The position numbers and the translations under genes were made by a program. A stretch of 64,000 nucleotides of DNA from Macrostomum hystrix (taxonomy: Eukaryota; Animalia; Platyhelminthes). The notes under the pieces are model-generated. The model made no database searches, was not told where the DNA came from, and saw nothing but the letters and a program-made list of their open reading frames with translations. The DNA lies in the NCBI GenBank assembly GCA_950097015.1, contig CATNEN010000024.1, positions 5,642,001-5,706,000 on the forward strand, written 5' to 3'. This document shows, piece by piece, positions 15,959 through 63,460 of this stretch (position 1 is the stretch's first letter; the number at the start of each line of letters is the position of its first letter).

Positions 15959-18517
15959 ATGTGGTGTCCGCTGCAGCCACTGCCGCAGCCACCACAGCTG
16001 ACGCTGCTGCTGCTACTGCTGTTGTCTGCGAGCTGTTGGGACTCCTGTTCGGCAATAAAATGGCTGTGAGTAAATAATGACAACTGTTTTTCCTCCTTTA
16101 AAGTTTTGAGAGGCTGTTGGGTGAGAGGCTGTTGGGTGAGAGGCTGTTGGGTGAGAGGCTGTAGGGTGAGAGGCTGTAGGGTGAGAGGCTGTAGGGTGAG
16201 AGGCTGAAGGGTGAGAGGCTGTAGGGTGAGAGGCTGAAGGGTGAGAGGCTGTAGGGTGAGAGGCTGAAGGGTGAGAGGCTGAAGGGTGAGAGGCTGTAGG
16301 GTGAGAGACTGTAGGGTGAGAGGCTGAAGGGTCAGAGGCTGTTGGGTAAGAGGCTGTTGGGTGAGAGGCTGTTGGGTGAGAGGCTGTAGGGTGAGAGGCT
16401 GTTGGGTGAGAGGCTGTTGGGTGAGAGGCTGAAGGGTGAGAGGCTGTAGGGTGAGAGGCTGTAGGGTGAGAGGCTGTAGGGTGAGAGGCTGAAGGGTGAG
16501 AGGCTGTAGGGTGAGAGGCTGTAGGGTGAGAGGCTGTAGGGTGAGAGGCTGAAGGGTGAGGCAATGTAGGGTGAGAGGCTGTAGGGTGAGAGACTGTAGG
16601 GTGAGAGGCTGAAGGGTGAGAGGCTGTTGGGTAAGAGGCTGTTGGGTGAGAGGCTGTTGGGTGAGAGGCTGTAGGGTGAGAGGCTGTTGGGTGAGAGGCT
16701 GTTGGGTGAGAGGCTGAAGGGTGAGAGGCTGTAGGGTGAGAGGCTGTAGGGTGAGAGGCTGTAGGGTGAGAGGCTGTTGGGTGAGAGGCTGTAGGGTGAG
16801 GCTGTAGGGTGAGAGGCTGTAGGGTGAGAGGCTGAAGGGTGAGAGGCTGTAGGGTGAGAGGCTGAAGGGTGAGAGGCTGTAGGGTGAGAGGCTGAAGGGT
16901 GAGAGGCTGAAGGGTGAGAGGCTGTAGGGTGAGAGACTGTAGGGTGAGAGGCTGAAGGGTCAGAGGCTGTTGGGTAAGAGGCTGTTGGGTGAGAGGCTGT
17001 TGGGTGAGAGGCTGTAGGGTGAGAGGCTGTTGGGTGAGAGGCTGTTGGGTGAGAGGCTGAAGGGTGAGAGGCTGTAGGGTGAGAGGCTGTAGGGTGAGAG
17101 GCTGTAGGGTGAGAGGCTGAAGGGTGAGAGGCTGTAGGGTGAGAGGCTGTAGGGTGAGAGGCTGTAGGGTGAGAGGCTGAAGGGTGAGGCAATGTAGGGT
17201 GAGAGGCTGTAGGGTGAGAGACTGTAGGGTGAGAGGCTGAAGGGTGAGAGGCTGTTGGGTAAGAGGCTGTTGGGTGAGAGGCTGTTGGGTGAGAGGCTGT
17301 AGGGTGAGAGGCTGTTGGGTGAGAGGCTGTTGGGTGAGAGGCTGAAGGGTGAGAGGCTGTAGGGTGAGAGGCTGTAGGGTGAGAGGCTGTAGGGTGAGAG
17401 GCTGTTGGGTGAGAGGCTGTAGGGTGAGGCTGTAGGGTGAGAGGCTGTAGGGTGAGAGGCTGAAGGGTGAGGCAATGTAGTGTGAGAGGCTGTAGGGTGA
17501 GAGGCTGTTGGGTGAGAGGCTGCAGTGTGAGATACGGCAGGGTGAGATACTGAAGGGTGAGACAATGAAGGGTGAGGCAATGAAGGGTGAGACTCTGAAA
17601 TGGGAGAAGGGTGGAAACAAGCGTTAGAGCCCCCTGCAGAAGAAGGTGCATCGGGATGTTCAGTGTGACCAGCCGCCGCTGCCCGCTCTCGCAGAGGATT
17701 GTCCAAGTTTGAAGCACTGAGCGATGGCGCCTCCCTGACAGACTTTTGCAACGCGATGCAGCGGCAGTCCATATTCGACTCACGGCAGAGCAGGCTCTGT
17801 AAGAATTCGTCTTCTCGAGCGGACAACGCTGCGATCGTGTCCGCCCTCATCGATGCCTCAAAGCAGACTTTGGCACTGTGCCAGCATCAGTTACGGGGCT
17901 TCAGATGGAACTGCGGAGTGCTGGAGCACGTGCCGCAGCTGGCGCCAGAGCTGAGGACCCGTGAGTTGGTTTCCGCTGTGCCCAATCGCACCAGTCTGTT
18001 GGTTTCCGCTGTCCCCAATCACACCAGTCTGTTGGTTTCCGCTGTCCCCAATCACACCAGTCTGTTGGTTTCCGCTGTCCCCAATCACACCAGTCTGTTG
18101 GTTTCCGCTGTCCCCAATCACACCAGTCTGTTGGTTTCCGCTGTCCCCAATCGCACCAGTCTGTTGGTTTCCGCTGTCTCCATTCACACCAGTCTGTTGG
18201 TTTCCACTGTCTCCATTCACACCAGTCTGTTGGTTTCCGCTGTATTCACCCACACCAGTCTGTTGGTTTCCGCTGTCTCCACTCACACAGTGACTGCAGA
18301 GCAGGCTCTGGTGCACGCTTTGTCTGGCTTCGTGTTGGCCACGAGCCTTGCCAACGATTGCGCCCGTGGTGCCATCGCGGACTGCCCGTGCGGCGCTGAG
18401 CCCACCTGGCTGCGGGATAAATGGCCAGGTGTACCATTCAGCTTGGAGGCCTGCCACACCAATCTGCAGATGGGCCAACGGCTGGCTCGCCAGTTTCTTA
18501 TCGGAGGCGGCAGAGGC

Positions 18518-18556
<39 letters not shown>

Positions 18557-21500
18557 AGAGGCGGCGGCGGCGGCAGCGGCGGCGTCAGCAACGGCGGCGA
18601 CAGACGACAGCGGCGTCGTCGGCCACGACCCCGCCAATCCGGGGCCAGCGACGCCTCCTCGGGCCAGATCTACAGGAAATTTGCGCGCAAGGTGAATCGG
18701 CACAATTACCGGGTTGGCATCAAGGCCACGAAGCACAGCGAGGCTGTGCGCTGCAAATGCCACGGCACCAGTGCCTCCTGCACAATCCGCACCTGTCACA
18801 AGGTGCTGCACCAGCGCGGCCTTCAGATGCGGCCAACGGATTATGTGCGACGAACTGAAAAGGATCCGATCGATTTGCTAATCAACATGTATGATAAGGT
18901 GAGCTGCGGCATCTGACAGATTAGATTGACGGCTGGGAAGAGCAACTAACCCTGCTAGACAATGGCTAAGATGCTTATTCTGCTTAAGAGGCACACCTGC
19001 TAGATAAGAGGTACACCTGCTAGATAAGAGGTACACCTGCTAGATAAGAGGCACACCTGCTAGATAAGATGCACACCTTCAAGATAAGATGCACACCTGC
19101 TAGATAATAGGCACACCTGCTAGATAAGATTCCGACCAGATAGATAAGAGGCATATCGTCTAGATGAGGTTCACACCTGCTAGATGAGGTTCACACCTGC
19201 TAGATGAGATTCACACCTGCTAGATGAGGTTCACACCCGCTAGATGAGGTTCACACCTGCCAGATGAGGTTCACACCTGCTAGATGAGGTTCACACCTGC
19301 TAGATGAGGTTCACACCTGCTAGATGAGGTTCACACCTGCTAGATGAGGTTCACACCTGTTGGACAATATGTATACTTGCTAGACAAAGTGTTCATATCA
19401 GAAAATCCATCACACTTGCTAGATAGGGCATGAATATATTAGCTATGCAATAATAGTTAGGCTAAATTCGTTATTGAACTCAAGCAAAACCTGCGGCGAA
19501 CCATATTCGACGAGCGAGGCTATCAGGGCTACGAGGAGCGCTGTACAGAGGCCGACCGGAACGCTGCCAACAACCCTCTGAATGCCAAGCAGCGCTGCGA
19601 GTTCTACAGAATTGTCAAAGGCCTGCCCAGCTCTGACGTGCTGCTGTTCAAGGAGCACTCACTCGACTACTGCTCACTGAGGGAGGGCCTCTACCCGGGA
19701 ACTACCGACAGGTGCGTCCAGCGCATCTCCTTTCCGTGTCTTTCTTGTCTGCTCTTCCTTGTCTCCTCTTCCTTGTCTCCTCTTCCTTGTCTCCTCTTCC
19801 TTGTCTACTCTTCCGTGTCTGCTCTTTCTTGTCTCCTCTTCCTTGTCTGCTCTTCCTTGTCTGCTCTTCCTTGTCTGCTCTTCCTTGTCTGCTCTTCCTT
19901 GTCTGCTCTTCCTTGTCTGCTCTTCCTTGTCTGCTCTTCCTTGTCTGCTCTTCCTTGTCTGCTCTTCCTTGTCTCCTCTTCCTTGTCTCCTCTTCCTTGT
20001 CTCCTCTTCCTTGTCTCCTCTTCCTTGTCTGCTCTTCCTTGTCTGCTCTTCCTTGTCTGCTCTTCCTTGTCTGCTCTTCCTTGTCTGCTCTTCCTTGTCT
20101 GCTCTTCCTTGTCTGCTCTTCCTTGTCTGCTCTTCCTTGTCTGCTCTTCCTTGTCTCCTCTTCCTTGTCTCCTCTTCCTTGTCTCCTCTTCCTTGTCTCC
20201 TCTTCCTTGTCTCCTCTTCCTTGTCTGCTCTTCCTTGTCTGCTCTTCCTTGTCTCCTTTTCCTTGTCTCCTCTTCCTTGTCTCCTTTTCCTTGTCTCCTC
20301 TTTCTTGTCTTCCTGTCTCATCTTCTTGTCTTTTCTTCCTTGTCTCTTTGTCTCCTCTTTATTTTATTTTTGTCTTTCTTGCATAATAATGCAAGAATTG
20401 CAGCAAACAAGCTCGGCGTCTCTCTCTCTCTCCCTCTCGCTCTCTCATCTCGGTGTCATTAATCAACGGTCACGCTGTAGTCCGAGTCGGCAGTGCTGTT
20501 CGTTGCAGTTTTCTCTTCGAAGATTCATTTAATATTCCTTCGTCTAGTTTTTGTCTGGTCGTTCAGGTGCTTTTCCACCGGGCCAGCCGCTGAACTCGAT
20601 CGCATTCGACAAATTTATGACCGCCGTTTCCTATTACTCGCTTAGCCTAATCAAATTGCGAATTCCGAATCTCCCAGACATTGCCTATTCAAGCATAAGC
20701 ACATACGAGAATACACATTATATTTGGAATATTGTGAAGCGCAAAAAATATTGGCCCTAGCAGAAGTTGGGCAATTCCCGGGGCCGGAAAGACTAGTTAA
20801 ATTCTAGGAAAAGCGGGCGGCGAGGGTACAGGCGGGATGGGTAGGCCGCGATTCCATGATTGATTGTCAGGCTATGGCCTGTCCAATGCCGGATCAGCCA
20901 CCGTCTCGCATACTTTCCTTATCAGACTTGAAATATCTGCGCTACTCCATTGCGGCGTCCAAGCGGCCCTTCAAAACCCACTTAGAAAACAATTCCAGGT
21001 GGCCTGAAAATGAGACACCCGGTCATTGGGGATCATCGTGAGACTGAGCGACAGTTTGAACTAGCCTCCGATCCAATCGGCTCCCGCGTCCGCCCATCAT
21101 CCGCCCCTCATCCGCCATCCCATCGAATCTAATCCATTCTTGCATACGCCACTGATCCGCCCCTGACTCATCATCATCCGCCCCTGAATTACCCTTATCC
21201 GCAAATCAGCCGCCCCCTGTCTCACTATCATCCGCCCCTCATCCGACCCTCATCCGACCCTCATCCGACCCTCATCCGCCCCTTATCCACACTTGTCTCA
21301 CCATCATCCGCCCCTCATCCGACCCTCATCCGACCCTCATCCGACCCTCATCCGACCCTCATCCGCCCCTTATCCACACTTGTCTCACCATCATCCGCCC
21401 CTCATCCGACCCTCATCCGACCCTCATCCGACCCTCATCCGACCCTCATCCGCCCCTTATCCACACTTGTCTCACCATCATCCGCCCCTCATCCGACCCT

Positions 21501-32200: not shown

Positions 32201-35200
32201 AAACCAACTAGCTTATCTAGAAACCAACCAGCTTATCTAGAAGCCAACCAGCTTATCTAGTAACCAACCAGATTATCTAGTAACCAACCAGCTTATCTAG
32301 TAACCAACCAGATTATCTAGTAACCAACCAGCTTATCTAGTAACCAACCAGCTTATCTAGAAACCAACTAGCTTATCTAGAAACCAACCAGCTTATCTAG
32401 AAGCCAACCAGCTTATCTAGTAACCAACCAGATTATCTAGTAACCAACCAGCTTATCTAGTAACCAACCAGCTTATCTAGAAACCAACCAGCTTATCTAG
32501 AAACCAACCAGCTTATCTAGTAACCAACCAGCTTATCTAGAAACCAACTAGCTTATCTAGAAACCAACCAGCTTATCTAGAAGCCAACCAGCTTATCTAG
32601 TAACCAACCAGCTTATATAGAAACCAACCAGCTTATCTAGAAACCAACCAGCTTATCTAGAAACCAACCAGCTTATCTAGAAGCCAACCAGCTTATATAG
32701 AAACCAACCAGCTTATCTAGAAACCAACCAGCTTATCTAGAAGCCAACCAGCTTATCTAGAAGCCAACCAGCTTATCTAGAAGCCAACCAGCTTATCTAG
32801 AAGCCAACCAGCTTATCTAGAAGCCAACCAGCTTATCTAGAAGCCAACCAGCTTATCTAGAAGCCAACCAGCTTATCTAGAAACCAACCAGCTTATCTAG
32901 TAAGCAACCAGCTCATCTAGTAACCAACCAGCTTATCTAGTAACCAACCAGCTTATCTAGAAGCCAACCAGCTTATCTAGAAACCAACCAGCCTATCTAG
33001 AAGCCAACCAGTTTATCTAGAAGCCAACCAGCTTATCTAGAAACCAACCAGCTTATCTAGAAGCCAACCAGCTCATCTAGAAGCCAATCAGCTCATCTAG
33101 AAGCCAACCAGCTTATCTAGAAGCGAACCAGCTCATCTAGAAGCCAACCAGCTCATCTAGAAGCCAACCAGCTTATCTAGAAGCCAACCAGCTTATCTAG
33201 TAACAAACCAGCTTATCTAGAAGCCAACCAGCTTATCTAGAAGCCAACCAGCTCATCTAGAAGCCAACCAGCTTATCTAGTAACCAACCAGCTTATCTAG
33301 AAGCCAATCAGAACCCCACGAATGCCCCCCGACCCGCAGAGCTGAAGGACGCGTTTGATTTCTTCGACATCGACAACGACGGCCGAATCTGCTGCGCGGA
33401 GCTTCAGAAGGTGCTGCGTTTCTTGGGAACCAAGGTCAACGAGGAGGAGGTCAAAGCGATGATCGCCGATGTAGACACCAATCGTGAGTCTGCCTCTCCA
33501 AAATTTCCCACCTCCTCAGAATCCCCACCTCCTCAGAATCCCCACCTCCTCAGAATCCCCACCTCCTCAGAATCCCCACCTCCTCAGAATCCCCACCTAC
33601 TCAGAATCCCCACCTCCTCAGAATCCCCACCTCCTCAGAATCCCCACCTCCTCAGAATCCCCACCTCCTCAGAATCCCCACCTCCTCAGAATCCCCACCT
33701 CCTCAGAATCCCCACCTCCTCAGAATCCCCACCTACTCAGAATCCCCACCTCCTCAGAATCCCCACCTACTCAGAATCCCCACCTCCTCAGAATCCCCAC
33801 CTCCTCAGAATCCTCCTGCTCCTCAGAATCCCCCACCACCCCAAAATCTCCCACCACCCAAGAATCCCCCACCACACCAGAATTCTCCCACTTTAAACAA
33901 ATTCCTTGACCTCCTCAGAATCCCCCACCTCCTCAGATTCCCCCAACTTTCTTGGAAAAAAAGTCTGCTGAGTCACAAAAATTTCCAGGAAACGGCACGG
34001 TGGAATTCAACGAATTCCTGCGCATGATGCGCGCCTACCACCATCGACACTGCGGGGGCCACTCCGAGGACGCTGAAATGTGGGAGGCCTTCAAGGTCAG
34101 CTGCAATGGGAAATTTTACCTCGCTTTAGCACATGTTTTTGTAGTGAATAGCCATCTGTTTGACGATTGAAATATTGGGATAATAATATTTTAGAATACA
34201 CTTTTCAAGTCTGCAAGTAGTTGGGGCCGCATGCTAGACAAAGAAATAACCTGTTAGACAAAGTAATAACCTGTTAGACAGGGAAATATCCTGTTAGACA
34301 GGGAAATATCCTGTTAGACAGGGAAATATCCTGTTAGACAGATAAATAAACTGTTAGACAGTGGACGAACTTGTTAGAAAGGGAAATAAAATGTTAATAC
34401 AGATCGTATTATCGAAAAATAATAGCCGTAGTGCTACTGGCAGTAGTAGCACTACAGACATTTTGCCGCTATTTTCATGCTCTTCACCTACTTCTCTTCT
34501 TCTCTCAACTAAAGGCTTTCGATCACAATGGCGACAACTACATAGATTTCACTGAGATAAAAAAGACTATGCAATTTCTTGGCGAAGAGGTGACAGACGC
34601 CGATGTGAAATCCATGATCAAAGAGGCCGACGTGGATAAAGACGGCCGAATCAATTTTGAAGGTAAGAAAATTTATATTATCAATGATACCTATCAAAAG
34701 TATAAGTATTTTTGATACAATAAACCAAAAATGATACCTATATTTGTGGTTTTTTCTACCAGACACACCGACGAGAATCGTTGAATATCTCGACGATGCC
34801 GATGTTTTATGATTCAGGAAGATGTTTTATCGGATAGAGAGGAAAATTTTAGCTTGTGTTCAGGATTTTCATGGCGGTTGGTTGAACATTTTGGGAGATA
34901 AAGAAAGAAGAACTATGTGTGGTATTTGAAATACCCAAATCGTCACTTGACTGTTGACGCTCTCAAACTCACACCGATAAAGAAAAATAAAAGAGAGTGA
35001 CAGGTGAGATAGAGGAACATCAAAGAGAGGGACAGGTGAGATAGAGGAAGATCAAAGAGAGGGACAGGTGAGATAGAGGAAGATCAAAGAGAGGGACAGG
35101 TGAGATAGAGGAAGATCAAAGAGAGGGACAGGTGAGATAGAGGAAGATCAAAGAGAGTGACAGGTGAGATAGAGGAAGATCAAAGAGAGGGACAGGTGAG

Positions 35201-51279: not shown

Positions 51280-54200
51280 ATGGTTTTCTACAGTGCTGGG
51301 CATCAGAATGACTATGCTCAGTTGAAATCTGGACCAGGTGGCAGCAAGCAAGCTGCACTTCAACCTTGGTTTGCTGCGCTGATTTTCATTCTGTTCCTGG
51401 AGACTGGATCGCAAGCTATCAACATCGGTAAGAGCAGCGCAGGCTTTTAATATACGAGTGCTGCTCTAGCAGGCTCGTATAGCAGCTAGAAAAAATACTT
51501 TTTGTGCTTTAACCGTTTACCGAATAAGTGTATTAAGAATCTTCATCATAATAAAATTTGCTCCCTTTCACGCTCAGAACTATTCCAAAGCTTAAAAACA
51601 TCGAAGCTTAAAAATCTCAGAACCACCGAAAGTCAAAGCGTCACAACCTCGAAGCCTAAAAATCTCAGAACCACCGACAGTCAAAGCGTCACAACCTCGA
51701 AGCTTAACAGTCTCAGAACCACCGGAAGTCAAAACGTCCCAACCTCGAAGCTTAACAATCTCAGAAGCACCTAAAGTCAAAACGTCACAACCTCGAAGCT
51801 TAACAATCTCAGAACCACAGAAAGTCAAAGCGTCACAACCTCGAAGCTTAACAATCTCAGAACCACAGAAAGTCAAAACGTCACAACCTCGAAGCTTAAC
51901 AATCTCAGAACCACCGAAAGTCAAAACGTCCCAACCTCGAAGCTTAACAATCTCAGAACCACCGAAAGTCAAAACGTCACAACCTCGAAGCTTAACAATC
52001 TCAGAAGCACCGAAAGTCAAAACGTCACAACCTCGAAGCTTACAAATCTCAGAACCACCGAAAGTCAAAGCGTCACAACCTCGAAGCTTAACAGTCTCAG
52101 AACCACAGAAAGTCGAAACGTCCCAACCTCGAAGCTTAACAATCTCAGAAGCACAGAAAGTCAAAACGTCACAACCTCGAAGCTTAACAATCTCAGAACC
52201 ACCGAAAGTCAAAACGTCACAACCTCGAAGCTTAACAATCTTAGAACCACCGAAAGTCAAAACGTCCCAACCTCGAAGCTTAACAATCTCAGAACCACCG
52301 AAAGTCAAAACGTCACAACCTCGAAGCTTAACAATCTCAGAAGCACCGAAAGTCAAAACGTCACAACCTCGAAGCTTACAAATCTCAGAACCACCGAAAG
52401 TCAAAGCGTCACAACCTCGAAGCTTAACAGTCTCAGAACCACAGAAAGTCGAAACGTCCCAACCTCGAAGCTTAACAATCTCAGAAGCACAGAAAGTCAA
52501 AACGTCACAACCTCGAAGCTTAACAATCTCAGAACCACCGAAAGTCAAAACGTCACAACCTCGAAGCTTAACAATCTTAGAACCACCGAAAGTCAAAACG
52601 TCCCAACCTCGAAGCTTAACAATCTCAGAACCACCGAAAGTCAAAACGTCCCAACCTCGAAGCTTAACAATCTCAGAACCACCGAAAGTCAAAGCGTCAC
52701 AACCTCGAAGCTTAACAGTCTCAGAACCACCGGAAGTCAAAACGTCCCAACCTCGAAGCTTAACAACCTCAGAAGCACCTAAAGTCAAAACGTCACAACC
52801 TCGAAGCTTAACAATCTCAGAACCACCGAAAGTCAAAACGTCACAACCTCGAAGCTTAACAATCTCAGAACTAACACAAGCTCAAAACTCCACCAGTTGA
52901 AAATGTCACAACCTCGAAGTTTAACAAGCTCAAAGCGATGCAGCATCGAAGCCTAAGACAAGCGCGGAGCTATACACAAGCTCAAAGCGCCACGACCTAA
53001 AACCTTAACAAGCGTGCTAAAGAAAATTTTCTGGCACAAAGAAATTTAACAATGGTAGATTTATCGCATTCCTGAGACGAAGAAATCATTAAAGTAAAGA
53101 TTTGTGGAGTGTCCTCGTAAATAACTTTTATGAGTACTGCAGTCTTTTTCTGATCAGAATTCTGAAAACTCAATTGTAATTTACTGCCCTTAATTATTGA
53201 ACAGGCGTTCATAACGACGAACAGATCCTCAGTTTTCTATCGAGTTTGAATGGCTCGGAAGTGGCTCGCAGATTCAATGCGACACCGGGTGGGACTGGCG
53301 GAAAATTTATCAACGCCAGCAGATTCGCGGTTGGCCCAGATCCCGAGACTTTGGAGCAAATGCGGTCATGTGAGTTACGCTAACGGGAAGGGAGTGAGGT
53401 AGGTGGAGCAGTAAGCTGGGTGGGTTAATGAGGAGGGTGGAGGAGGATAGAGAACTTTAGTTGAGTAAAGTAGTAAAGTGGATAAAGTAGTAAAGTGGAT
53501 AAATGAGTGATGCGGGTGGAGGAGTGAGGTGGGTGGATGAGTGAGGTGGGTAGAGGAGTGAGGTGGCTAGAGGAGTGAGGTGGCTAGAGGAGTGAGGTGG
53601 GTGGAGGAGTGAGGTAGGTAGAGGAGTGAGTTGGGTGGAGGAGTGAGGTGGGTGGAGGAGTGAGGTGGATGGAGGAATGAGGTGGGTGGAGGAATGAGGT
53701 GGGTAGAGGAGTGAGGTGAATTTAGGAGTGAGGTGAATTTAGGAGTGAGGTGGGTAGAGGAGTGAGGTCGCAGGATGAGTGAGGTGAATTTAGGAGTGAG
53801 GTGGGTAGAGGAGTGAGGTCGCAGGATGAGTGAGGTGAATTTAGGAGTGAGGTGGGTAGAGGAGTGAGGTCGCAGGATGAGTGAGGTGAATTTAGGAGTG
53901 AGGTGGGTAGAGGAGTGAGGTCGCAGAAGGAATGAGGTGGGTAGAGGAGTGAGGTGGCTGGAGGAGTGAGGTGGGTGGAGGAATGAGGTGGTTAGAGGAG
54001 TGAGGTGAATTTAGGAGTGAGGTGGGTAGAGGAGTGAGGTCGCAGGAGGAGTGAGGTGAATTTAGGAGTGAGCTGGCTGAGGGAGTAAAGTGGATGGACG
54101 AGTGAGTTGGCTAGAGTAGTGAGGTAGATAGAGGAGTAAAGTTGATGAAGGACTGAGGTGGGTAGAGGAGTAAGGTCGGTGGAAAAGTGAGGTGGTTGGA

Positions 54201-57200
54201 GGGGTGAGTTCAGTTTAAGAGTGAGCTGCTTGAAGGAGTGAAGCGAGTGGTTGCCGCAATGAGATGGGGGGCAAATCGACAAAAAAAATACGCTTTTCTT
54301 TCCGTTGCAGACATCGAGACAGTCAGGAAGAATCCTCCCGATTTGATAATCGGCAGTTTTAACGGCACCATAGCAGCCATAGCCAGCGAGCTGGGCATTC
54401 CATGTTATTGCACCAGTCCCAGCCATCAAAACAGGGTCCTGGAGGATTTCAGCTACCTTCGCGGCAGCTCCCTACTTTTAATGAATTCTTACACCGAGGA
54501 CATGGTGGCGGCCTCGCAGAAGCTGACTAACACCGTCCTTCAGCGACGGGCTCTTATTGTCATTGCAGACACCGTCAGCGACAGTAAGGAACCTCTTCTT
54601 ATTTTTGTTTATCTCTTCTATTGAAGGGTTGCGAAGGATATAATCGTCTTTTTTTGTCCGATCTCTTGAAGGACTAAGGCTGGAGTGGGGTGGGGACCAT
54701 TGGGTTGAGTACAGGAAGGGGTGAGGTGGGCGCAGTAGTGAGGTGGGCGCAGTAGTGAGGTAAGCGCAGGAGTGAGTTGGGCGCAGGAGTGAGGTAAGCG
54801 CAGGAGTGAGTTGGGCGCAGGAGTGAGGTAAGCGCAGGAGTGAGGTAAGCGCAGGAGTGAGTTGGGCGCAGGATTGAAGCGGGACCTACTGATGAATCAT
54901 TTAACATTAGGCTCCTAATTTTTCTTTCCAGGCTTGAATTATCTGCTGAATTCTCTGTCAAATCAGGAACTTCATGTGGTACTTCTTCGCAACTCCAGCA
55001 ACGCCAGCTTTATTCACGAATCATTGTACAACACCAGCCAAAGAGCTAACATTACTGCGGCCGTGTTCCAGACATTGTTCTCGTCTGCACCTATGTTGGG
55101 GAATGTACTGCCTGAGGTAGGTGTCCAGTAAATGCTTTGAACTACTTTGCATGACAGCTGAAGTTGGAATAGACTAAAAAGTGATCTAAAAAAGGCTCGT
55201 GACAAGCTCCACAAAAGAAGCAAGAATTCCTCAATAAATTGTTTTGCTTGCAGGCCGCCGCGCTAAGTCTGATGAAGAACACAACATACTGGATTGTCAC
55301 AGACTTGGTAAGAATTTCCGCAACAACTTTAAGTCTTGTTGGTTCGCTCACACTTTAATATTAGTTGGAAGCCCGCTGTTTATGTATGTGACACTCATAA
55401 GAATGGCCTCTACTCATAATCGGAAAGAAATAAATAGCTAGGTTTGTGTCAATCGGTTGCAACAAAGACCTCAGGGTTTCCAAATTTGTGAGAGGAGATG
55501 ATACTGAAGCCCGAGCCAAACTATCCACGGCTTTCAGTTCCCTGATGTCGCGCAGCTGATGGCCTACCGCAGAACCGGTTGTGCGGTCTTCTCGTTCGCC
55601 CTCTCGACAGCAAATGTGACCTCAGCTGCCAAGCTGTCGCTTGCCATGGCGGAGGACGCAGTCGGGCACTTTCTAAAGGCAACTGCGGGCGGAGCCGCGT
55701 TCAACTTTAGTGCGGCTTCGACAGTGAGTCTGATCTGACACTCACTATATAAGCTTTTCTTAAAGTATTTTTCTTTTATGGAAGCCCTTTCTCAAGATGG
55801 CCACAACCCCCACTCGAGCTGTTAATGAACACAACCCCACTCGAGCTGTTTATGGCCACAACCCCACTCTATCTGTATAAGGGCCGAAAAAGAAATTAGA
55901 GTAATTTAAAAAAATTAGATTAAAGTTAAAGAGACAGTTTCATGAAAAACTGGGTAACTATCCGCAGACCAGCTACTCGGGTGTGCTGGGACAGCTACAG
56001 TTCAATGTCGTCACTAGGCGAAATCAATTGAGTCGTCTGAAAATTATGATGACGTCACATAAACTTCCTTACATAGACGAGGTGAGTATGCTGTCGCGCA
56101 CCATCATTCATTATGTCTCTTACGGTATTGATCTCCATCAATATTCTTCTCGTATTGAACTTTCAGTTCGGAATTTGGGCCAAGAGCAATGCGGATGGCA
56201 TCACACTGCTACACGGCGGCTTAACTAATAAACTTCCCAGTCTCAAGGTGCTGGCGTTCATGGTGAGTCCGAAAGCTTCTGGAATAGAGTCAAAAAATAG
56301 TCTCACGGATAAAAAATAGCATTGATAATCAACAATCTAACATAAGACAATCGATGATCTACCAGAGACAAGCAATCTTCTATGACTATTCACTCAAACA
56401 TTCTACGGTAGACGACAAGAGTTATGCCATAGACGATCAAATATTTTACGGTAGATGACAAGAGTTATGACATAGACGAACAAATATTCTTCGTTAGACG
56501 GCAAGAGTTATGCCATAAACAATCAAATATTCTACGGTAGACGATCCACATTCTTCCATCGAAACAAGAGTTATGCCATAGACGATCAAATATTCTACGG
56601 TAGACGATCCGCATTCTTCCAAAGAGAGACAATCAAAAGTTCACCACAGAAAACCATCTTGCTACGAGCGTACCTGAAGCAATCAATAGCCTACCTTTGG
56701 ACGATAATCAACGTCAATTTCAGCAAGAGCCATTCATGATGAGCTCAGCCACTGAGTACTATGGCTTTAGCGTCAGTGTGCTGTCGGACATCAGCAACGG
56801 GTTGTTCGACCTGGATATTGTGCCAGTTTCGGAATTCTCCAGTCTGCTGCCTTTACTGCGCCAAGGGGTCTGTCATACCAGATACTCATACATTAATTGT
56901 AAATATTTCTAATAGAAGCATAAAAGCTGCTTAATAAATCCCGATGAAAATCTCCTAAAGGTGGGCGACATCATCGCGAATCCCATACAGCTGCCGTTGG
57001 ACAGCAGCAAGAATGACTCGAACGTGAGCTATTCTTCCTGGCCGCTGATGTACACAAGCGTGACGGCCCTAGGCTTCGCCGAGACGCCCGCGCTGGACTT
57101 CCTCAGCCCGCTCTATCCGTTCTCCTGGAACGTCTGGCTAGCCGTGATCGTCGCCTTCGTAGTGTTGTCGGCAACTCTCTATTCCACCGACAAGATCAGC

Positions 57201-60200
57201 CCCAACGATTACAGGCGGCCAAAGTTCAGCATAGCCGAGTCCGTCTTCTTCGTCTATTCGTCCTTCATGATGTCAAAATTGCGCGCCACTGCCGTCAAGC
57301 CATCGTCTCGCATCTTCATCCTGATCCTGTGGTTCGCCTCGCTGATGTACTGCACAACCTACGGCACCAACGCCTTCTTCATGCTGATCCGCAGCAATCG
57401 CGGCCTGCCGTTCACCTCGCTAACCACTCTGTACAACCAGAGCAGCCAATTCTACCGGGTGATGGTGGAAAACAGCACCAGCTTGCAGGTGCTGGCGGCC
57501 CAGCCGGAGGGATCTGTGTACAAGTCTCTGGTTCCGACCAGCCTGCTGGTCGAGTCCGCAGATGCCGCCGTGTCGTTGGTGAATAACCAGACGAGACTGC
57601 CGGATGGCCGGCGGCCAATCTACGTCGGTGACGGCGCCACAATCAACTACATTGTGGCCAAGTCGTGTGATTTGACAACCACCGGATCTGACGAACTGCA
57701 CCGGCCTTTGCACCTGGCAATGAGGACCGGATTGAATGCCAGACTGCGGAGACTTATCAGCGATCGGATACAGGTGATGTCCGACCACGGCCTGCTGGAC
57801 CAGTATCAGGACATGTGAGCGGAAGCTGCCTTACTGCTGCGGATGACAGACAAGATAAGAAGCAATTGCTAGGCATCATAAGGAATAGATACTTGGACAA
57901 CATTGGAGGGATCAGGGCCAAAGGGCAATAAAAGATAAGTGCCTGAAAGCGTTGGGAAGCAAGCCGCATTGGGATTAGTTGGGGATAGCTGGCAAGCATG
58001 AAAGATTTTTACCTGGATATTCACTAATTTAAATATATTCTAACCTGGGTTGCTACTTGCTGTACTTGCTGTCTTTGGGGTATGCACTTGCTGTCTTTGG
58101 GGTATGTACTTGCTGTCTTTGGGGTATGCACTTGCTGTCTTTGGGGTATGTACTTGCTGTCTTTGGGGTATGCACTTGCTGTCTTTGGGGTATGTACTTG
58201 CTGTCTTTGGGGTATGCACTTGCTGTCTTTGGGGTATGTACTTGCTGTCTTTGGGGTATGTACTTGCTGTCTTTGGGGTATGTACTTGCTGTCTTTGGGG
58301 TATGTACTTGCTGTCTTTGGGGTATGTACTTGCTGTCTTTGGGGTATGTACTTGCTGTCTTTGGGGTATGTACTTGCTGTCTTTGGGGCATGTACTTGCT
58401 GTCTTTGGGGCATGTACTTGCTGTCTTTGGGGCATGTACTTGCTGTCTTTGGGGTATGTACTTGCTGTCTTTGGGGTATGCACTTGCTGTCTTTGGGGTA
58501 TGTACTTGCTGTCTTTGGGGTATGTACTTGCTGTCTTTGGGGCATGTACTTGCTGTCTTTGGGGTATGTACTTGCTGTCTTTGGGGCATGTACTTGCTGT
58601 CTTTGGGGCATGTACTTGCTGTCTTTGGGGCATGTACTTGCTGTCTTTGGGGTATGTACTTGCTGTCTTTGGGGTATGCACTTGCTGTCTTTGGGGTATG
58701 TACTTGCTGTCTTTGGGGTATGCACTTGCTGTCTTTGGGGTATGTACTTGCTGTCTTTGGGGTATGTACTTGCTGTCTTTGGGGTATGTACTTGCTGTCT
58801 TTAGGGGTGATAATAATACCTACGGGAGGGCTGTGCTCACTGGCACATAATCTGATGACACTAGACCCGCAGCCAGCGAGGTGGCAATTCTGTCCATTCC
58901 GCTGACTCCCGAGCACACACGCACACAGATACTGTATGCCGGCACACACTCACAAAGGGTATCTCTAAGAATAAATGTAAGAGTAGAATTGTGATAATAA
59001 TAATTAATATGTTTCAATGCCACAGGTACTGGTCAGCCGTTAAATGCTCCTCAAATGACAACCTTATCAATGTCAAGGAGCTGAGCTCGATTAGAATCGA
59101 ACAAGTCTCCGGCATTTTCATTGTGCTGGCCTGCGCATTGGTACTGTCCTTCTTTGTCCTGCTGCTGGAGTATGCTGTACACCAGCTACAGCTGTACTGG
59201 CACCGCAATGCAAGTGCTGCCTCATCAACTGTCTTTCTGTACCGGGTGTCTGTCCTTCTGTACTGGGTGTCTGTCCTTCTGTACCGGGTGTCTGTCCTTC
59301 TGTACCGGGTGTCTGTCCTTCTGTACCGGGTGTCTGTCCTTCTGTACCGGGTGTCTGTCCTTCTGTTCCGGGTGTCTGTCCTTCTGTACCGGCTGACTGT
59401 CATTCAGTACCGGGTGTCTGCCTTTATATCTTTCAATCGACACTTCGAACTTTGAATTTAAGGCAACAGAAATTCATTAAATTCAAACCATCCAGAAAGT
59501 GAATGCCCGCCTGGAATTCATGACGCCATACCGAGCAGAGGTTACCTGCGTCTCACCTCTTGGAATTTACATCCGGGTGCAGGGCTGGCAGGAATTCCTG
59601 CCGAACCAGATGCTATCGCCTGATCCCAACAAGGTTTGTACACTCTGTTCTATTCCATTCTATTTCATTCTATTACATTCCATTCCATTATATTACGAGC
59701 TACATTATATTCATTTCTATTCCATTCTATTTCATTCTATTACATTCTATTCCATTCTTTTCAATTCTATTCACTTCTATTACATTCTATTCACTTCTAT
59801 TACATTATATTCCATTCTATTCCATTCTATTCCATTCTATTCAATTCTATTACATTCTATTCCATTCCATTCAATTCAAGCCCGTATTCTAGGTCTGCAG
59901 GATAGATGTGGAATTCTATGTATCTTTCAGCCGCATCTACTCTATTTGTTAGCTGAAATTTCACCGCATAAACAATGAGCTCTGCTAGCCACAGATGACA
60001 TCACTTAAAACAAAAACTGTAGCAGTCGCCAGCCAGAACATCTTTATTCAGTAAGCCGTGTAACAGAAATGTCACATCGCTGGAAGTCAAGTTGAAAGGT
60101 GATCCGTCACGAGCACGCACGGCTTTGCTGCTGCTGGGCGCTTCATCTGTCTTCCGTGTTTTTACCATGTGTATTCCTTCCGATTTTCAGTTTAATAATG

Positions 60201-60379
60201 GTCAATTGCAAAATCGGAAACACAGAGACAGTGATTTCAGGTTTCTGTTCGCTAATTTTTCAATCCCGCAGAAAATCAGCGCCGCCGATCTGCAGATTCG
60301 CAACGGTGACACAGTGGAAGTTGTGTACTTTGGCAACGACCCCAAAACTGGAGAGCGACTGTTTAAGAGGAGCGGCTGA
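51280..60379 (+). CDS. Divergent ionotropic glutamate receptor-like channel with a predicted C-terminal PNPase-type S1 domain (~880-895 aa)
   Basis: Exons 51280-51427, 53205-53369, 54311-54583, 54932-55116, 55254-55307, 55538-55723, 55968-56081, 56167-56262, 56724-56867, 56961-57814, 59026-59209 (or -59245), 59496-59633 and 60272-60379, all phase-consistent. Signal peptide; ATD (LIIG..IP, YWIVTDL, GVLGQLQF); S1 lobe (EPFMM..YYGFSV); M1 PFSWNVWLAVIVAF; pore FSIAESVFFVYSSFMMSK; M3 SRIFILILWF; S2; YWSAVKC; M4 EQVSGIFIVLACALVLSFFVLLLEY. The iGluR call is strong; the join to the last two exons is inferred. Confidence 0.88.
51595..52925. repeat. 48-bp minisatellite, ~27 copies
   Basis: aacctcgaagcttaacaatctcagaaccaccgaaagtcaaaacgtcac; iGluR intron 1. 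Confidence 0.96.
53385..54235. repeat. ~17-bp purine-rich repeat (gaggagtgaggtgggt-)
   Basis: iGluR intron 2. Confidence 0.9.
54715..54875. repeat. 17-bp repeat (gcgcaggagtgaggtaa)
   Basis: iGluR intron 3; related to the intron 2 array. Confidence 0.85.
56340..56625. repeat. Degenerate ~45-bp repeat (tagacgatcaaatattctacggtagacgacaagagttatgcca)
   Basis: iGluR intron 8. Confidence 0.75.
58060..58802. repeat. 22-bp minisatellite (tacttgctgtctttggggtatg)
   Basis: iGluR intron 10. Confidence 0.96.
59233..59420. repeat. 21-bp repeat (ctgtaccgggtgtctgtcctt)
   Basis: Immediately after the M4 exon. Confidence 0.9.
59496..60379 (+). CDS. S1 (OB-fold) RNA-binding domain of PNPT1/PNPase type, encoded by two exons
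   Basis: Exons 59496-59633 and 60272-60379 give KVNARLEFMTPYRAEVTCVSPLGIYIRVQGWQEFLPNQMLSPDPNK|KISAADLQIRNGDTVEVVYFGNDPKTGERLFKRSG*. As recalled, metazoan PNPT1 S1 reads [24 protein letters not shown]...LLHNTQL...[28 protein letters not shown]. Confidence 0.8.
59645..59880. repeat. 5-bp satellite (attct/attcc)
   Basis: Intron splitting the S1 domain. Confidence 0.9.
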
Positions 60380-60454
60380 TTTGAAAGTTAACGATTGCGC
60401 ACTTTGATTGTTACAACTGCTGCTTCTAGTACAGTAAAATCTAACTGAACATTC

Positions 60455-61240
60455 ATGGGAGAAAGGAGAGAGTTGGGGAGAACGGGAAGTGTTGGGGGAG
60501 AAAGGAGAGAGTTGGGGAGAAAGGGAAGTAGTGGGGGAGAATGGAGAGAGTAGAGGGAATGAGAAAGTATAGGGGAGAAATAGGAGAGTTATGAGAGTTA
60601 TGGGAGGAAGGAGAGAGTAGGGGCAAAAAGGAGAGAGTAAAGAGAAATGAGAAAGTAGGGGAGAAATAAGAGAGTTAGGCGAGAAATGTGAGAGTTGGGG
60701 GAGAAAGGAGAGAGTTGGGGGAGAAATGTGAGAGTTGGGGGAGAAATGTGAGAGTTGGGGGAGAAATGAGAGAGTTGGGGGAGAAATGAGGGAGTTGGGG
60801 GAGAAATGTGAGAGTTGGGGGAGAAATGAGAGAGTTGGGGGAGAAATAAGAGAGTTGGGGGAGAAATGAGAGAGTTGGGGGAGAAATGTGAGAGTTGGGG
60901 GAGAAATGAGAGAGTTGGGGGAGAAATAAGAGAGTTGGGGGAGAAATGAGGGAGTTGGGGGAGAAATAAGAGAGTTGGGGGAGAAATGAGAGAGTTGGGG
61001 GAGAAATGAGGGAGTTAGGCGAGAAATGAGAGAGTTGGGGGAGAAATGAGAGAGTTGGGGGAGAAAGGAGAGAGTTGGGGGAGAAATGAGGGAGTTGGGG
61101 GAGAAAGGAGAGAGTTAGGGGAAAAATGAGAGAGTTGGGGAAAAAGGAGAGAGTTGGGGGAGAAAGGAGAGAGTTGGGGGAGAAAGGAAAGAGTAAGTGG
61201 AGAAATGAGGGAATTGGGGGAGAATGGACAGAGTGGGAAA
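60455..61240. repeat. 20-bp purine-rich repeat (gagaaatgagagagttgggg)
   Basis: Downstream of the iGluR-S1 stop codon. Confidence 0.93.
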
Positions 61241-61919
61241 GTAGGAAATGAATTTCAGCAGACTATTTTTTCGCATATCACAATGTAATTAATACGAATT
61301 CTTTTCCTACGGCATTAAGGCTGACTGCAACGTCAAAACAAATAAAACTGATTGTACAGAGAGCAGTCAAAGCTTCTCAGCAGAAATTTAAGCCAGTGAG
61401 CGTATCCACTGTCATACTACTAGCAATTTTTCCTCTGCACTTGTCCACCCAGCTGAGCTGATTTGCAGTTGAGTTGGAATGTGAGACAAAGTGTATTGAG
61501 GCCAGCGGCTCAGAGTGAGCAGTGAAGCGTTTGAGCACGGGAGATGGGAAAAGGTTTGGAAGAAGATCCTAAGAGTGTGGCGACCGGTTTCCCCTTAGCA
61601 TTCTTTAGGCGTCTATTTTGTCGAGCAGAAAATGAGTAAGGAGAAGCATTAAAAATGGGATATCGTCAATTACATGCAACCAACCAGCCTGGAACTTGTG
61701 TACGCTCACTCTGTGGGCAGCCTATGACTCGTTCTTTAATGACCAAAATCATGTCTGAAAAGCACAAGATTCTCGGCCAAAACATCATCTCAACATCGGA
61801 AATAATTTTTTCAAACTCAGCGTTTCTATGACAAATTCGAATATTCATTTTTTGTTCTCACTATTTTCTCATTTATATTAACTCCTAGCATTGATGTTTT
61901 CGAAAATAACGACTTGTTG

Positions 61920-63460
61920 TCATTCTCATGATTATAATTCTCGCGATTCTCATTCTCATGATTCTCATTCTCATGATTCTCATTCTCATGAATCTCATTC
62001 TCCTGATTCTCATTCTCCTGATTCTCATTCTCATGATTCTCATTCTCCTGATTCTCATTCTCCTGATTCTCATTCTCATGAATCTCATTCTCCTGATTCT
62101 CATTCTCATGATTCTCATTCTCATGATTCTCATTCTCCTGATTCTCATTCTCATGAATCTCATTCTCCTGATTCTCATTCTCCTGATTCTCATTCTCATG
62201 ATTCTCATTCTCCTGATTCTCATTCTCCTGATTCTCATTCTCATGATTCTCATTCTCCTGATTCTTATTCTCCTGATTCTCATTCTCATGAATCTCATTC
62301 TCCTGATTCTCATTCTCCTGATTCTCATTCTCATGATTCTCATTCTCCTGATTCTTATTCTCCTGATTATCATTCTTATGATTCTCATTCTCCTGATTGT
62401 CATTCTCCTGATTCTCATTCTCATGATTGTCATTCTCCTGATTCTTATTCTCCTGATTATCATTCTTATGATTCTCATTCTCCTGATTCTCATTCTCCTG
62501 ATTCTCATTCTCATGATTCTCATTCTCCTGATTCTTATTCTCCTGATTCTCATTCTCATGAATCTCATTCTCCTGATTCTCATTCTCCTGATTCTCATTC
62601 TCATGATTCTCATTCTCCTGATTCTTATTCTCCTGATTATCATTCTCATGATTCTCATTCTCCTGATTGTCATTCTCCTGATTGTCATTCTCATGATTGT
62701 CATTCTCACAATTGGCATTCTCATGATTGTCATTCTCATGATTCTCATTCTCATGATTCTCATTCTCCTGATTCTTATTCTCCTGATTCTCATTCTCAAG
62801 ATTCTCATTCTCATGATTCTCATTCTCATGTTTCTCATTCTCATGATTCTCATTCTCCTGATTCTCATTCTCATGATTCTCATTCTCCTGATTCTTATTC
62901 TCCTGATTCTCATTCTCATGAATCTCATTCTCCTGATTCTCATTCTCCTGATTCTCATTCTCATGATTCTCATTCTCCTGATTCTTATTCTCCTGATTCT
63001 CATTCTCATGAATCTCATTCTCCTGATTCTCATTCTCCTGATTCTTATTCTCCTGATTCTTATTCTCCTGATTCTCATTCTTATGATTCTCATTCTCCTG
63101 ATTCTCATTCTCCTGATTGTCATTCTCCTGATTGTCATTCTCATGATTGTCATTCTCACAATTGGCATTCTCATGATTGTCATTCTCATGATTCTCATTC
63201 TCATGATTCTCATTCTCATGATTCTCATTCTCTGATTCTCATTCTCAAGATTCTCATTCTCATGATTCTCATTCTCTGATTCTCATTCTCAAGATTCTCA
63301 TTCTCATGATTCTCATTCTCATGATTCTCATTCTCTGATTCTCATTCTCAAGATTCTCATTCTCATGATTCTCATTCTCTGATTCTCATTCTCATGATTC
63401 TCATTCTCATGAATCTCATTCTCCTGATTCTCATTCTCAAGATTCTCATTCTAATGAGAA
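61920..63460. repeat. 15-bp minisatellite (tctcattctcctgat)
   Basis: About 100 copies. Confidence 0.96.

Follow-up and report, generated by a model that had tools for sequence, protein, structure and literature searches.

Does the last coding part of a flatworm glutamate receptor gene encode an RNA-binding-type domain? The window analysed here is a 64,000-nucleotide stretch of Macrostomum hystrix DNA, in which an iGluR-like gene on the forward strand is followed by two short exons. The first-pass annotation had read these exons as an S1 domain of the PNPT1 type, spliced in frame behind the last membrane helix (M4) of the receptor. This observation was confirmed, and every testable part of its interpretation held. 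We regard it as nearly certain that an intact gene is expressed from this locus and that it encodes a divergent AMPA/delta-like iGluR subunit with a PNPT1-type S1 tail, which begins about 25 residues past the M4 membrane helix. A folded, selected RNA-binding-type domain at an iGluR C-terminus appears to be without precedent in print, as a literature search found no paper describing an iGluR-plus-S1 architecture.

Gene structure and transcripts

Upstream exons of the iGluR-like gene, placed by tblastn and a splice model, lie on the + strand at 53205-53369, 54311-54583, 54932-55116, 55254-55307, 55538-55723, 55968-56081, 56167-56262, 56724-56867 and 56961-57814. They code for the amino-terminal region, the ligand-binding lobes, M1, the pore loop, M3 and the S2 lobe, and are collinear in tblastn with residues 34-714 of the M. 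lignano protein P0011. No signal-peptide exon of this gene was located in the window. The splice model, which uses canonical sites and an open frame, yields a product of 833 aa that shares 585 identical residues with P0011.

The M4 exon (59026-59209, +; ..DM/YWSAVKC..VSGIFIVLACALVLSFFVLLLEYAVHQLQLYWHRN) is defined by transcripts, by its match to P0011 and by an alignment of that orthologue to GluA2 that continues through M4. It closes at a phase-0 GC donor (AAT/GCAAGT). The GC..AG intron that follows (59210-59495, +; 286 nt), whose flanks 59209 and 59496 are joined in X2, X3 and X4, holds a 21-bp minisatellite (59229-59424) and an unused read-through stop at 59455. The first tail exon, S1 exon a (59496-59633, +; 46 codons, phase 0-0), encodes a linker and beta1-beta3 of the S1 barrel (KVNARLEFMTPYRAEVTCVSPLGIYIRVQGWQEFLPNQMLSPDPNK) and translates as KVNARLEF...SPDPNK. 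It is separated by a GT..AG intron of 638 nt (59634-60271, +), inside which a 10-bp unit (TTCTATTCCA) is repeated in an array at 59648-59877, from S1 exon b (60272-60379, +). The latter encodes beta4-beta5 (KISAADLQIRNGDTVEVVYFGNDPKTGERLFKRSG), translates as KISAADLQ...FKRSG and ends with the stop TGA at 60377-60379. Both exons were identified by transcripts, profile and model, and each has the coordinates and the exact translation that had been proposed for it. The minimum 3' UTR in RNA is 60380-60409 (+), the contig from X3 reaching 60409. A 20-bp minisatellite begins at 60457, downstream of the 3' UTR seen.

In each of three public runs from a single study (X2, X3 and X4), one assembled contig (856-937 nt, depth 8.7-23.5) spans the channel-to-tail splice chain, which leads from the upstream iGluR exon (end at 57814) to 59026-59209, 59496-59633 and 60272 onward. 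The library type of these runs is unrecorded ("?"), and we infer their RNA nature from the precise splicing of the contigs. Of the iGluR exon 56961-57814, the contigs include the last 473 nt; the 30 nt displayed are 57785-57814. Because the same contigs carry this upstream exon, M4 and the tail share one RNA with the channel core.

In the assembled transcripts of all three runs the acceptors ..CCATCCAG (before 59496) and ..TCCCGCAG (before 60272) and the donor after 59633 (GTTTGT) are used, so that the M4 exon is joined in phase 0 to two phase-0 tail exons, as had been predicted. The predicted joint from 59633 to 60272 is likewise present in every run, reported there as 59631 to 60270 with the cut at +2; the repeat at 59643-59885 was left out of read placement. 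Two donors had been suggested for M4, and the contigs use the one at 59209 and not the one at 59245. No read-through form with the stop at 59455 was seen, and 59253-59476 is covered by no contig in the three runs. An Rfam search gave no credible match for a highly covered intronic segment (58856-58936).

The channel core

M1, a re-entrant pore loop, M3, the S2 lobe and M4 follow each other in iGluR order, and the region 56961-57818 matches Pfam Lig_chan (PF00060) with E=6.1e-15 and 55.8 bits (cut-off 30.8). The orthologue P0011 matches Lig_chan with 66.9 bits over residues 485-753; it also matches GluA2 (E=2e-20, aligned through M4) and GluD1 (4e-18). The likeness to these AMPA/delta-type receptors includes the collinearity of M1 to M4, the conserved Cys and the pattern ..LD.Y...YW..C before M4.

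The gate is different: YGTNAFFM takes the place of YTANLAAF of GluA2, and Met stands at the Q/R position. The gate segment of the window reads CTTYGTNAFFML. When GluA2 ssYtaNlaaf is aligned with ttYgtNaffl of the orthologue, Tyr and Asn alone are kept, and the SYTANLAAF motif as such is absent. Since both the gate motif and the Q/R position are atypical, we call the channel function putative. P0011 gives no match to PF10613 (Lig_chan-Glu_bd) and only a weak one to SBP_bac_3; its paralogue P0010 has PF10613. In lobe 1, the ligand-contacting Arg seems to be replaced by Asn, as judged from an ungapped extension of the GluA2 alignment.

No hydrophobic segment follows M4, and the tail is therefore predicted to be cytoplasmic by standard iGluR topology, in agreement with the earlier reading. 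C-terminal tails of iGluRs are usually disordered and carry short docking motifs. The tail described here is instead a folded S1 domain, unlike the disordered tails with short linear motifs of AMPA/delta-type receptors. That the locus is not an intact PNPase gene, as had also been claimed, is argued from the transcript and from Pfam architecture: the S1 exons are joined directly to M4, the two RNase PH domains and the KH domain that precede S1 in a PNPase have no Pfam match in P0011 and P0010, and full-length P0011 has Lig_chan, SBP_bac_3 and S1 as its only Pfam domains.

Identity of the C-terminal tail

When the tail exons were queried singly against PDB and Pfam, nothing useful was returned; the S1 signal appeared only in the joined tail, and most clearly in the profile of the tail family. 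The tail (81 aa) scores 18.6 bits (E=0.0026) against Pfam S1 (PF00575), under the gathering cut-off of 22 bits, and its relatives are also under that cut-off (19.6-20.2 bits for the orthologue, 14.4 for the paralogue). A phmmer search of PDB with the single tail sequence gave E=0.19. Because single-sequence scores stay below the Pfam cut-off, the S1 assignment is not based on them.

A profile built from six tails matches human PNPT1 residues 630-701, its S1 domain, with E=2.8e-11, RNase II being second at 0.36. Two motifs, LEFG..Y.A.(I/V)T and YFG.DP..G, are common to the tails and PNPT1. The AlphaFold2 model of the tail (pLDDT 86) has five strands (11-20, 23-28, 31-36, 60-68 and 75-79), which in the model form an OB barrel (beta1-3 / gap / beta4-5) superposable on solved S1 domains. 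The Foldseek matches listed for PDB are S1 or S1-type OB folds (TM 0.6-0.72) and include bS1, eIF2alpha, RNase II, PNPase KH-S1, SPT6, Tex, DHX8 and Rpb7. In AFDB/Swiss-Prot, the top three matches are mouse, human and orang-utan PNPT1 673-750 (TM 0.82-0.83, rmsd 1.7-2.2 A), and those listed below them are all bacterial PNPases; PNPT1 and PNPase S1 domains together range from 0.7 to 0.83 in TM against the tail model. The resemblance to the PNPT1 S1 domain is well beyond chance at the profile and fold level and marginal for a single sequence. The proposal that the tail is an S1 OB fold nearest to metazoan PNPT1 is borne out by the six-tail profile and the structural matches alike.

Another type of small beta barrel was considered. 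In a representative search, tail residues about 29-77 matched the multi-repeat proteins P0002, P0003 and P0006, and P0006, the only one of them scanned, bears Tudor_5/Agenet repeats; the tail also has a weak match (E=0.036) to Pfam hSH3. It is nevertheless scarcely credible that the tail is a Tudor/Agenet/SH3-like barrel and not an S1 domain, as the Tudor/Agenet-type matches span only its second half and are summed across many repeats, whereas the whole-domain profile match is to PNPT1 S1, the modelled topology is that of an OB fold (beta1-3 / gap / beta4-5) and the structural neighbours listed are S1-type folds. In the light of the fold searches, the matches to P0002, P0003 and P0006 were put down to a partial similarity between beta barrels.

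The tail and the human PNPT1 S1 domain (PDB 9kjr/9njb) are five-stranded OB barrels of equal length, each C-terminal in its protein. They differ in sequence, with identity of about 26-27% and Pro in the tail in place of the His of human LLHNTQL, and in context: the tail is attached to a membrane helix, the S1 domain of PNPT1 to a phosphorolytic core. Their locations would differ as well, the tail being expected in the cytoplasm at the plasma membrane and PNPT1 residing in the mitochondrial intermembrane space.

Conservation and origin of the fusion

The window gene is collinear with, and 70% identical to, the 867-aa P0011 (signal peptide to tail), and the M. lignano locus L001 has the same exon structure, GC donor included. 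Fusion members in M. lignano are P0011, P0001 and the paralogue P0010/P0005, the tail of which is 35% identical, and at least two genes of that species have the channel-plus-S1-tail arrangement. The same arrangement is found in P0004, which comes from another transcriptome and is 53% identical to P0011, and P0007, from long-read metagenomes of Tara Pacific corals, is an uninterrupted 298-aa ORF (S2 lobe, M4 and tail) on DNA contigs. A transcript of another species (L002) retains an intron at the same place as in S1 exon a (DASK followed by GT). The suggested search for other channel-plus-S1 architectures has thus found an orthologue, a paralogue and further members; word-index protein searches returned nothing beyond the query itself and proteins of M. 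lignano.

The tail is under purifying selection. In the comparison of the window with L001 (dS about 1; about 1.3 for the tail), the tail has a dN/dS of 0.107 and M4 one of 0.106, the value for the core being 0.155.

These data bear on the possibility that the M4-S1 junction stems from a read-through or chimeric transcript of no function, in which the iGluR gene is joined to a leftover piece of a duplicated PNPT1 and the real protein ends elsewhere. The weak S1 signal of any single sequence would fit it, as would the in-frame stop at 59455, available if the GC donor is skipped, and among the M. lignano gene models P0009 is a clear chimera that includes a downstream GPCR. We consider it very improbable and close to refuted: the spliced form is the sole form seen in three runs, M. 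lignano has the same exon structure and GC donor, the fusion is kept in a 35%-identical paralogue and in more distant members, one of them a single ORF on DNA, and dN/dS of the tail is 0.107 at a dS of about 1.3.

In public proteomes, the tail is without annotation. The novelty is one of recognition, not of sequence, as the public M. lignano proteome already contains the architecture, though without annotation. Sub-threshold Pfam matches hide real domains in flatworm proteomes.

As to origin, we infer that exon shuffling supplied the S1 tail and that its source was the mitochondrial PNPase (PNPT1) of the same animal. In such a process, with which the phase-0 intron and the symmetric 0-0 exon are consistent, the S1-coding end of a copy of PNPT1 would have been placed behind M4 in a transfer predating the divergence of the paralogues. 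If exon shuffling took place, part of a mitochondrial RNA-decay enzyme was moved onto a neuronal-type receptor.

Potential function of the tail

In the S1 domains of E. coli PNPase and bS1, the RNA-contact face is formed by two aromatics in beta2/beta3, by a His that follows beta3 and by the beta5 residues Asp and Arg. The beta5 pair (G-N/K-D...R-L/I-F) is kept in every aligned member that includes beta5, and the beta3 G-x-[YW] position is aromatic in four of five members. The first aromatic position is variable among tails, with Tyr of the window aligned to Arg of the M. lignano orthologue, and in the tail family Pro, Ala or Thr replaces the canonical His, which in human PNPT1 lies within LLHNTQL. 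RNA binding has, in our estimate, about an even chance of being the job of the tail. In a tetramer, four S1 domains would lie below the inner membrane face and could bind single-stranded RNA or RNP; the bound RNA might be held at the receptor, or its occupancy might affect trafficking or gating.

S1 folds can also act as protein-docking modules, for example in eIF2alpha. A doubtful but credible reading is that the S1 barrel was re-used, with no RNA involved, as a protein-binding or assembly module, which might dock a scaffold, a kinase or a trafficking factor or might hold the tetramer together as a cytoplasmic cap. The tail would then take the role that the PDZ-ligand and other C-terminal motifs have in other iGluRs. 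Loss of the conserved His of the nucleic-acid face in all members and the variable first aromatic position are in its favour; eIF2alpha, an S1 fold with a protein-recognition surface, is among the structural matches, and strong purifying selection on the tail is compatible with any specific ligand. Against it, the tail is nearest to the genuine RNA-binding S1 domains of PNPT1 and PNPase, the beta5 Asp/Arg pair is kept, the beta3 residue is mostly aromatic, and the proposed module has no known partner.

The most far-reaching form of the RNA-binding reading is rather unlikely, in our estimate. The protein would then be the first among ligand-gated channels to have an RNA-binding domain of its own, its four sub-pore S1 domains binding cytoplasmic single-stranded RNA or RNPs and either anchoring specific mRNAs (e.g. 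for local translation) or letting RNA occupancy set trafficking or gating. If the tail does bind RNA, fast chemical signalling at the membrane would be linked directly to RNA localisation or sensing.

TRPM7 and TRPM2 are TRP channels whose catalytic or nucleotide-binding domains have demonstrated roles. Like TRPM7 with its kinase and TRPM2 with its NUDT9-homology domain, the subunit described here combines a channel with a folded cytoplasmic domain from an unrelated enzyme family. The host in this case is an iGluR, however, and the guest is a non-catalytic fold of the RNA-binding type. The question of RNA binding is tractable: M. lignano is a laboratory model, transgenic and RNAi-amenable, a description in line with the title of PMC3447372.

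Gene structure and transcription

The iGluR-like gene lies on the forward strand of a window that is eukaryotic in character, rich in minisatellites and marked by short introns. A large exon matching Pfam Lig_chan (56961-57814, E=6.1e-15) is followed downstream by an exon encoding a hydrophobic M4-like helix (59026-59209) and by two forward-strand exons, S1 exon a (59496-59633) and S1 exon b (60272-60379). They translate to 46 aa and to 35 aa with a stop codon, identical to the peptides given in the first-pass annotation. Residues 34 to 857 of P0011, the full-length (867 aa) M. lignano orthologue, were collinear with the window in tblastn, and a splice model with canonical sites joined 12 exons from 53205 to 60379 into an open 833-aa product, 585 residues of which are identical to P0011. 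These matches place the window in a Macrostomum-like flatworm distinct from M. lignano. Neither approach found a signal-peptide exon for the window gene. Long, fairly pure minisatellites with 10-40 bp units fill introns and intergenic DNA of the window (58061-58808, 59229-59424, 59648-59877, 60457-61234 and many other places, for example 51592-52836, 53500-54230 and 61885-63280) and produce numerous spurious long ORFs in either orientation.

A run search found 41-47% of sampled words of 56900-60450, about the exon share of this region, in four small runs of a single study; one further run with a different label was also found. We compared reads of four public runs (X1-X4) with 58805-60460, skipping the repeat at 59643-59885. 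X2, X3 and X4 each yielded one fusion contig (856, 937 and 856 nt; depth 23.5, 8.7 and 16.2, respectively), consisting of 473 nt from upstream of the compared region, then 59022/59026-59209, 59496-59631/3 and 60270/2-60328, the last block extending to 60409 in X3. Thirty upstream letters (CCGACCACGGCCTGCTGGACCAGTATCAGG) equal window positions 57785-57814, where the Lig_chan exon ends. The contigs skip a 286-nt GC..AG intron and a 638-nt GT..AG intron, and from this exact intron removal we infer that X2-X4, all from one study, are RNA. Two donors had been proposed behind M4; in the assembled contigs the one at 59209 (AAT/GCAAGT, the slash marking the splice boundary) is used and the one at 59245 is not. 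Depth was zero across 59365-59476, and 59307-59357 was touched solely by a 51-nt repeat-matching contig in X4; X1-X4, in which contigs lose rare isoforms, thus showed no read-through as far as the stop at 59455.

Two other signals fall within introns. A 245-nt contig in the second tail intron (59937-60181, depth 3.8, X2 only) may stem from pre-mRNA, from an independent transcript or from an antisense one; a minus-strand 55-aa ORF (60001-60168) lies within its span. Between the exon end at 57814 and the M4 exon, contigs of 32-54 nt match an 80-bp segment (58856-58936) with a word depth of up to about 6600 (X2) and loose ends on both sides. This segment occurs once in the window and returned no credible Rfam family; it probably belongs to a dispersed repeat, or to an abundant RNA whose gene lies elsewhere.

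Identity of the C-terminal tail

Searched as a single sequence, the 81-aa tail fell short of the Pfam S1 cut-off of 22 bits (18.6 bits, E=0.0026), and its top PDB sequence match was human PNPT1 632-704 (E=0.19), which is marginal support for an S1 domain; the two exons searched individually gave no match. An exhaustive phmmer search of the tail against 1.84 billion representatives returned eight proteins, five of which carry it at the C-terminus of iGluR-like sequence. A profile of the six-tail alignment (A1) matched the human PNPT1 S1 domain along its entire length (630-701) with E=2.8e-11, followed by the RNase II S1 domain (E=0.36). AlphaFold2 on A1 (pLDDT 86, pTM 0.72) predicted strands at 11-20, 23-28, 31-36, 60-68 and 75-79, an OB pattern. 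The matches listed by Foldseek against the PDB were S1 domains and S1-type OB folds, namely ribosomal protein S1, eIF2alpha, RNase II and R, a PNPase KH-S1 construct, SPT6, Tex, DHX8 and Rpb7. The top three AlphaFold/Swiss-Prot matches were mouse, human and orang-utan PNPT1 residues 673-750 (TM 0.82-0.83, rmsd 1.7-2.2 A, 26-27% identity), and the remaining ones listed were all bacterial PNPase S1 domains. Together, the profile and structure matches identify the tail as a predicted S1 fold of one particular type, that of PNPase/PNPT1, in agreement with the original proposal. Multi-repeat proteins, among them P0006 with its Tudor/Agenet repeats, match the second half of the tail only; these partial matches were set aside.

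Orthologue, paralogue and distant members

The M. lignano orthologue is also represented by a partial protein, P0001 (PAA64932.1), and its locus matches the window in exon-intron structure around the tail. The GC-AG donor behind M4 is conserved (window 59209/59210, M. lignano locus 5103/5104, where the M4 exon ends ..CGA ATG/GCAAGT). The first tail exon starts ..TTCCAG/AAGGTGAAC and ends ACCAAG/GTTGGT, and the second is reached over a long intron with the acceptor ..CACCGCAG/AAAATGACG. For another M. lignano entry, P0009 (UPI0007A2BE68), predictors chose a GT donor 12 nt downstream of the GC, giving 'MASSSKVN'. This 974-aa model, in which iGluR-S1 is joined to a downstream aminergic-type GPCR (7TM), is almost certainly merged or chimeric, and hints at a GPCR gene immediately downstream of the orthologue.

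The paralogue P0010 (881 aa, with P0005 as a shorter model) comes from a further M. lignano gene. It combines Lig_chan-Glu_bd and Lig_chan domains with a signal peptide, and its tail shares 35% identity with the tail in the window. P0004, from a SRR28338165 contig, is 53% identical to P0011 and ends three codons into a retained intron, exactly at the boundary of the two S1 exons (DASK/GTAGAG..). P0007 (298 aa) holds the S2 lobe, M4 and tail within a single uninterrupted ORF and aligns with P0010 over all three. Its contigs derive from ERR14224704-6, which PMC13083261 lists as long-read coral metagenomes from Tara Pacific. In these contigs the fusion is DNA-encoded without a splice. P0008, from an ENA contig, is a 60-aa fragment of a similar tail; with P0007, it indicates that the fusion may extend beyond Macrostomum.

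The architecture appears to be lineage-restricted, to Macrostomum and at least one further organism. Public M. lignano members are named 'hypothetical', 'PBPe domain-containing' or 'Ionotropic glutamate receptor', and precomputed Pfam gives no S1 for them. We did not find the fusion in full-text literature on Macrostomum iGluRs, iGluRs with an S1 domain, or flatworm iGluR architecture. While the M. lignano sequences themselves were already public, an iGluR with a folded C-terminal domain of this kind appears to be unprecedented.

Selection and the channel part

Nei-Gojobori comparison of the window with the M. lignano locus gave dN/dS of 0.107 for the tail (80 codons, dS 1.34), 0.155 for the channel-core exon (283 codons, dS 0.97) and 0.106 for the M4 exon (60 codons, dS 0.99), ratios that are approximate because dS is close to saturation. 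The synonymous excess is nevertheless plain, and constraint on the tail is at least as strong as on the channel. That M4 and S1 form a meaningless chimera is nearly excluded.

The nearest solved structures to P0011 are GluA2 (E=2e-20) and GluD1 (E=4e-18). The M3 gate reads YGTNAFF(L/M), whereas typical iGluRs have YTANLAAF, and the Q/R site of GluA2 aligns with Met. When the GluA2 alignment is extended without gaps, Asn seems to take the place of the lobe-1 Arg. Pfam Lig_chan-Glu_bd gave no match in P0011 but matched the paralogue P0010. On these sequence features the protein is a putative ligand-gated and conducting channel.

Proposed role and origin

After the channel core and M4, the mature mRNA encodes some 14 residues that are probably helical (EYAVHQLQLYWHRN), a linker of roughly 10 and finally the S1 barrel; the protein stops three residues past strand beta5. 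Because iGluRs assemble as tetramers and their chains end in the cytoplasm behind M4, four S1 barrels would be suspended directly below the inner leaflet. Among the tails in A1, the beta5 G-(N/K)-D...R-(L/I)-F element is conserved and the beta3 position is usually Tyr or Trp, whereas a His of the PNPT1 S1 domain is lost. Given these features, binding of single-stranded RNA or RNP is the likeliest role, although we consider it only an even prospect; the main rival, re-use of the barrel for protein docking or assembly, is a tenable but doubtful explanation. The tail may well derive from a PNPT1 copy, whose terminal S1-coding portion would have been captured behind M4. Three features point to such a capture: the specific PNPT1 affinity of the tail, the phase-0 junction with a 0-0 exon, and a captured segment that begins immediately ahead of LEF, the opening motif of the PNPT1 S1 domain.

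Other candidate genes in the window

An ORF at 17699-18916 (+) with a Wnt-like motif at its end (..RCKCHGTSASCTIRTCH..) probably marks a Wnt family gene; a poly-Gly stretch and an array of peptides encoded by repeats also fall within this ORF. An EF-hand-like exon at 33411-33480 (+; ..LGTKVNEEEVKAMIADVDTN..), followed by a repeat array, may belong to a calmodulin-like or troponin-C-like gene.
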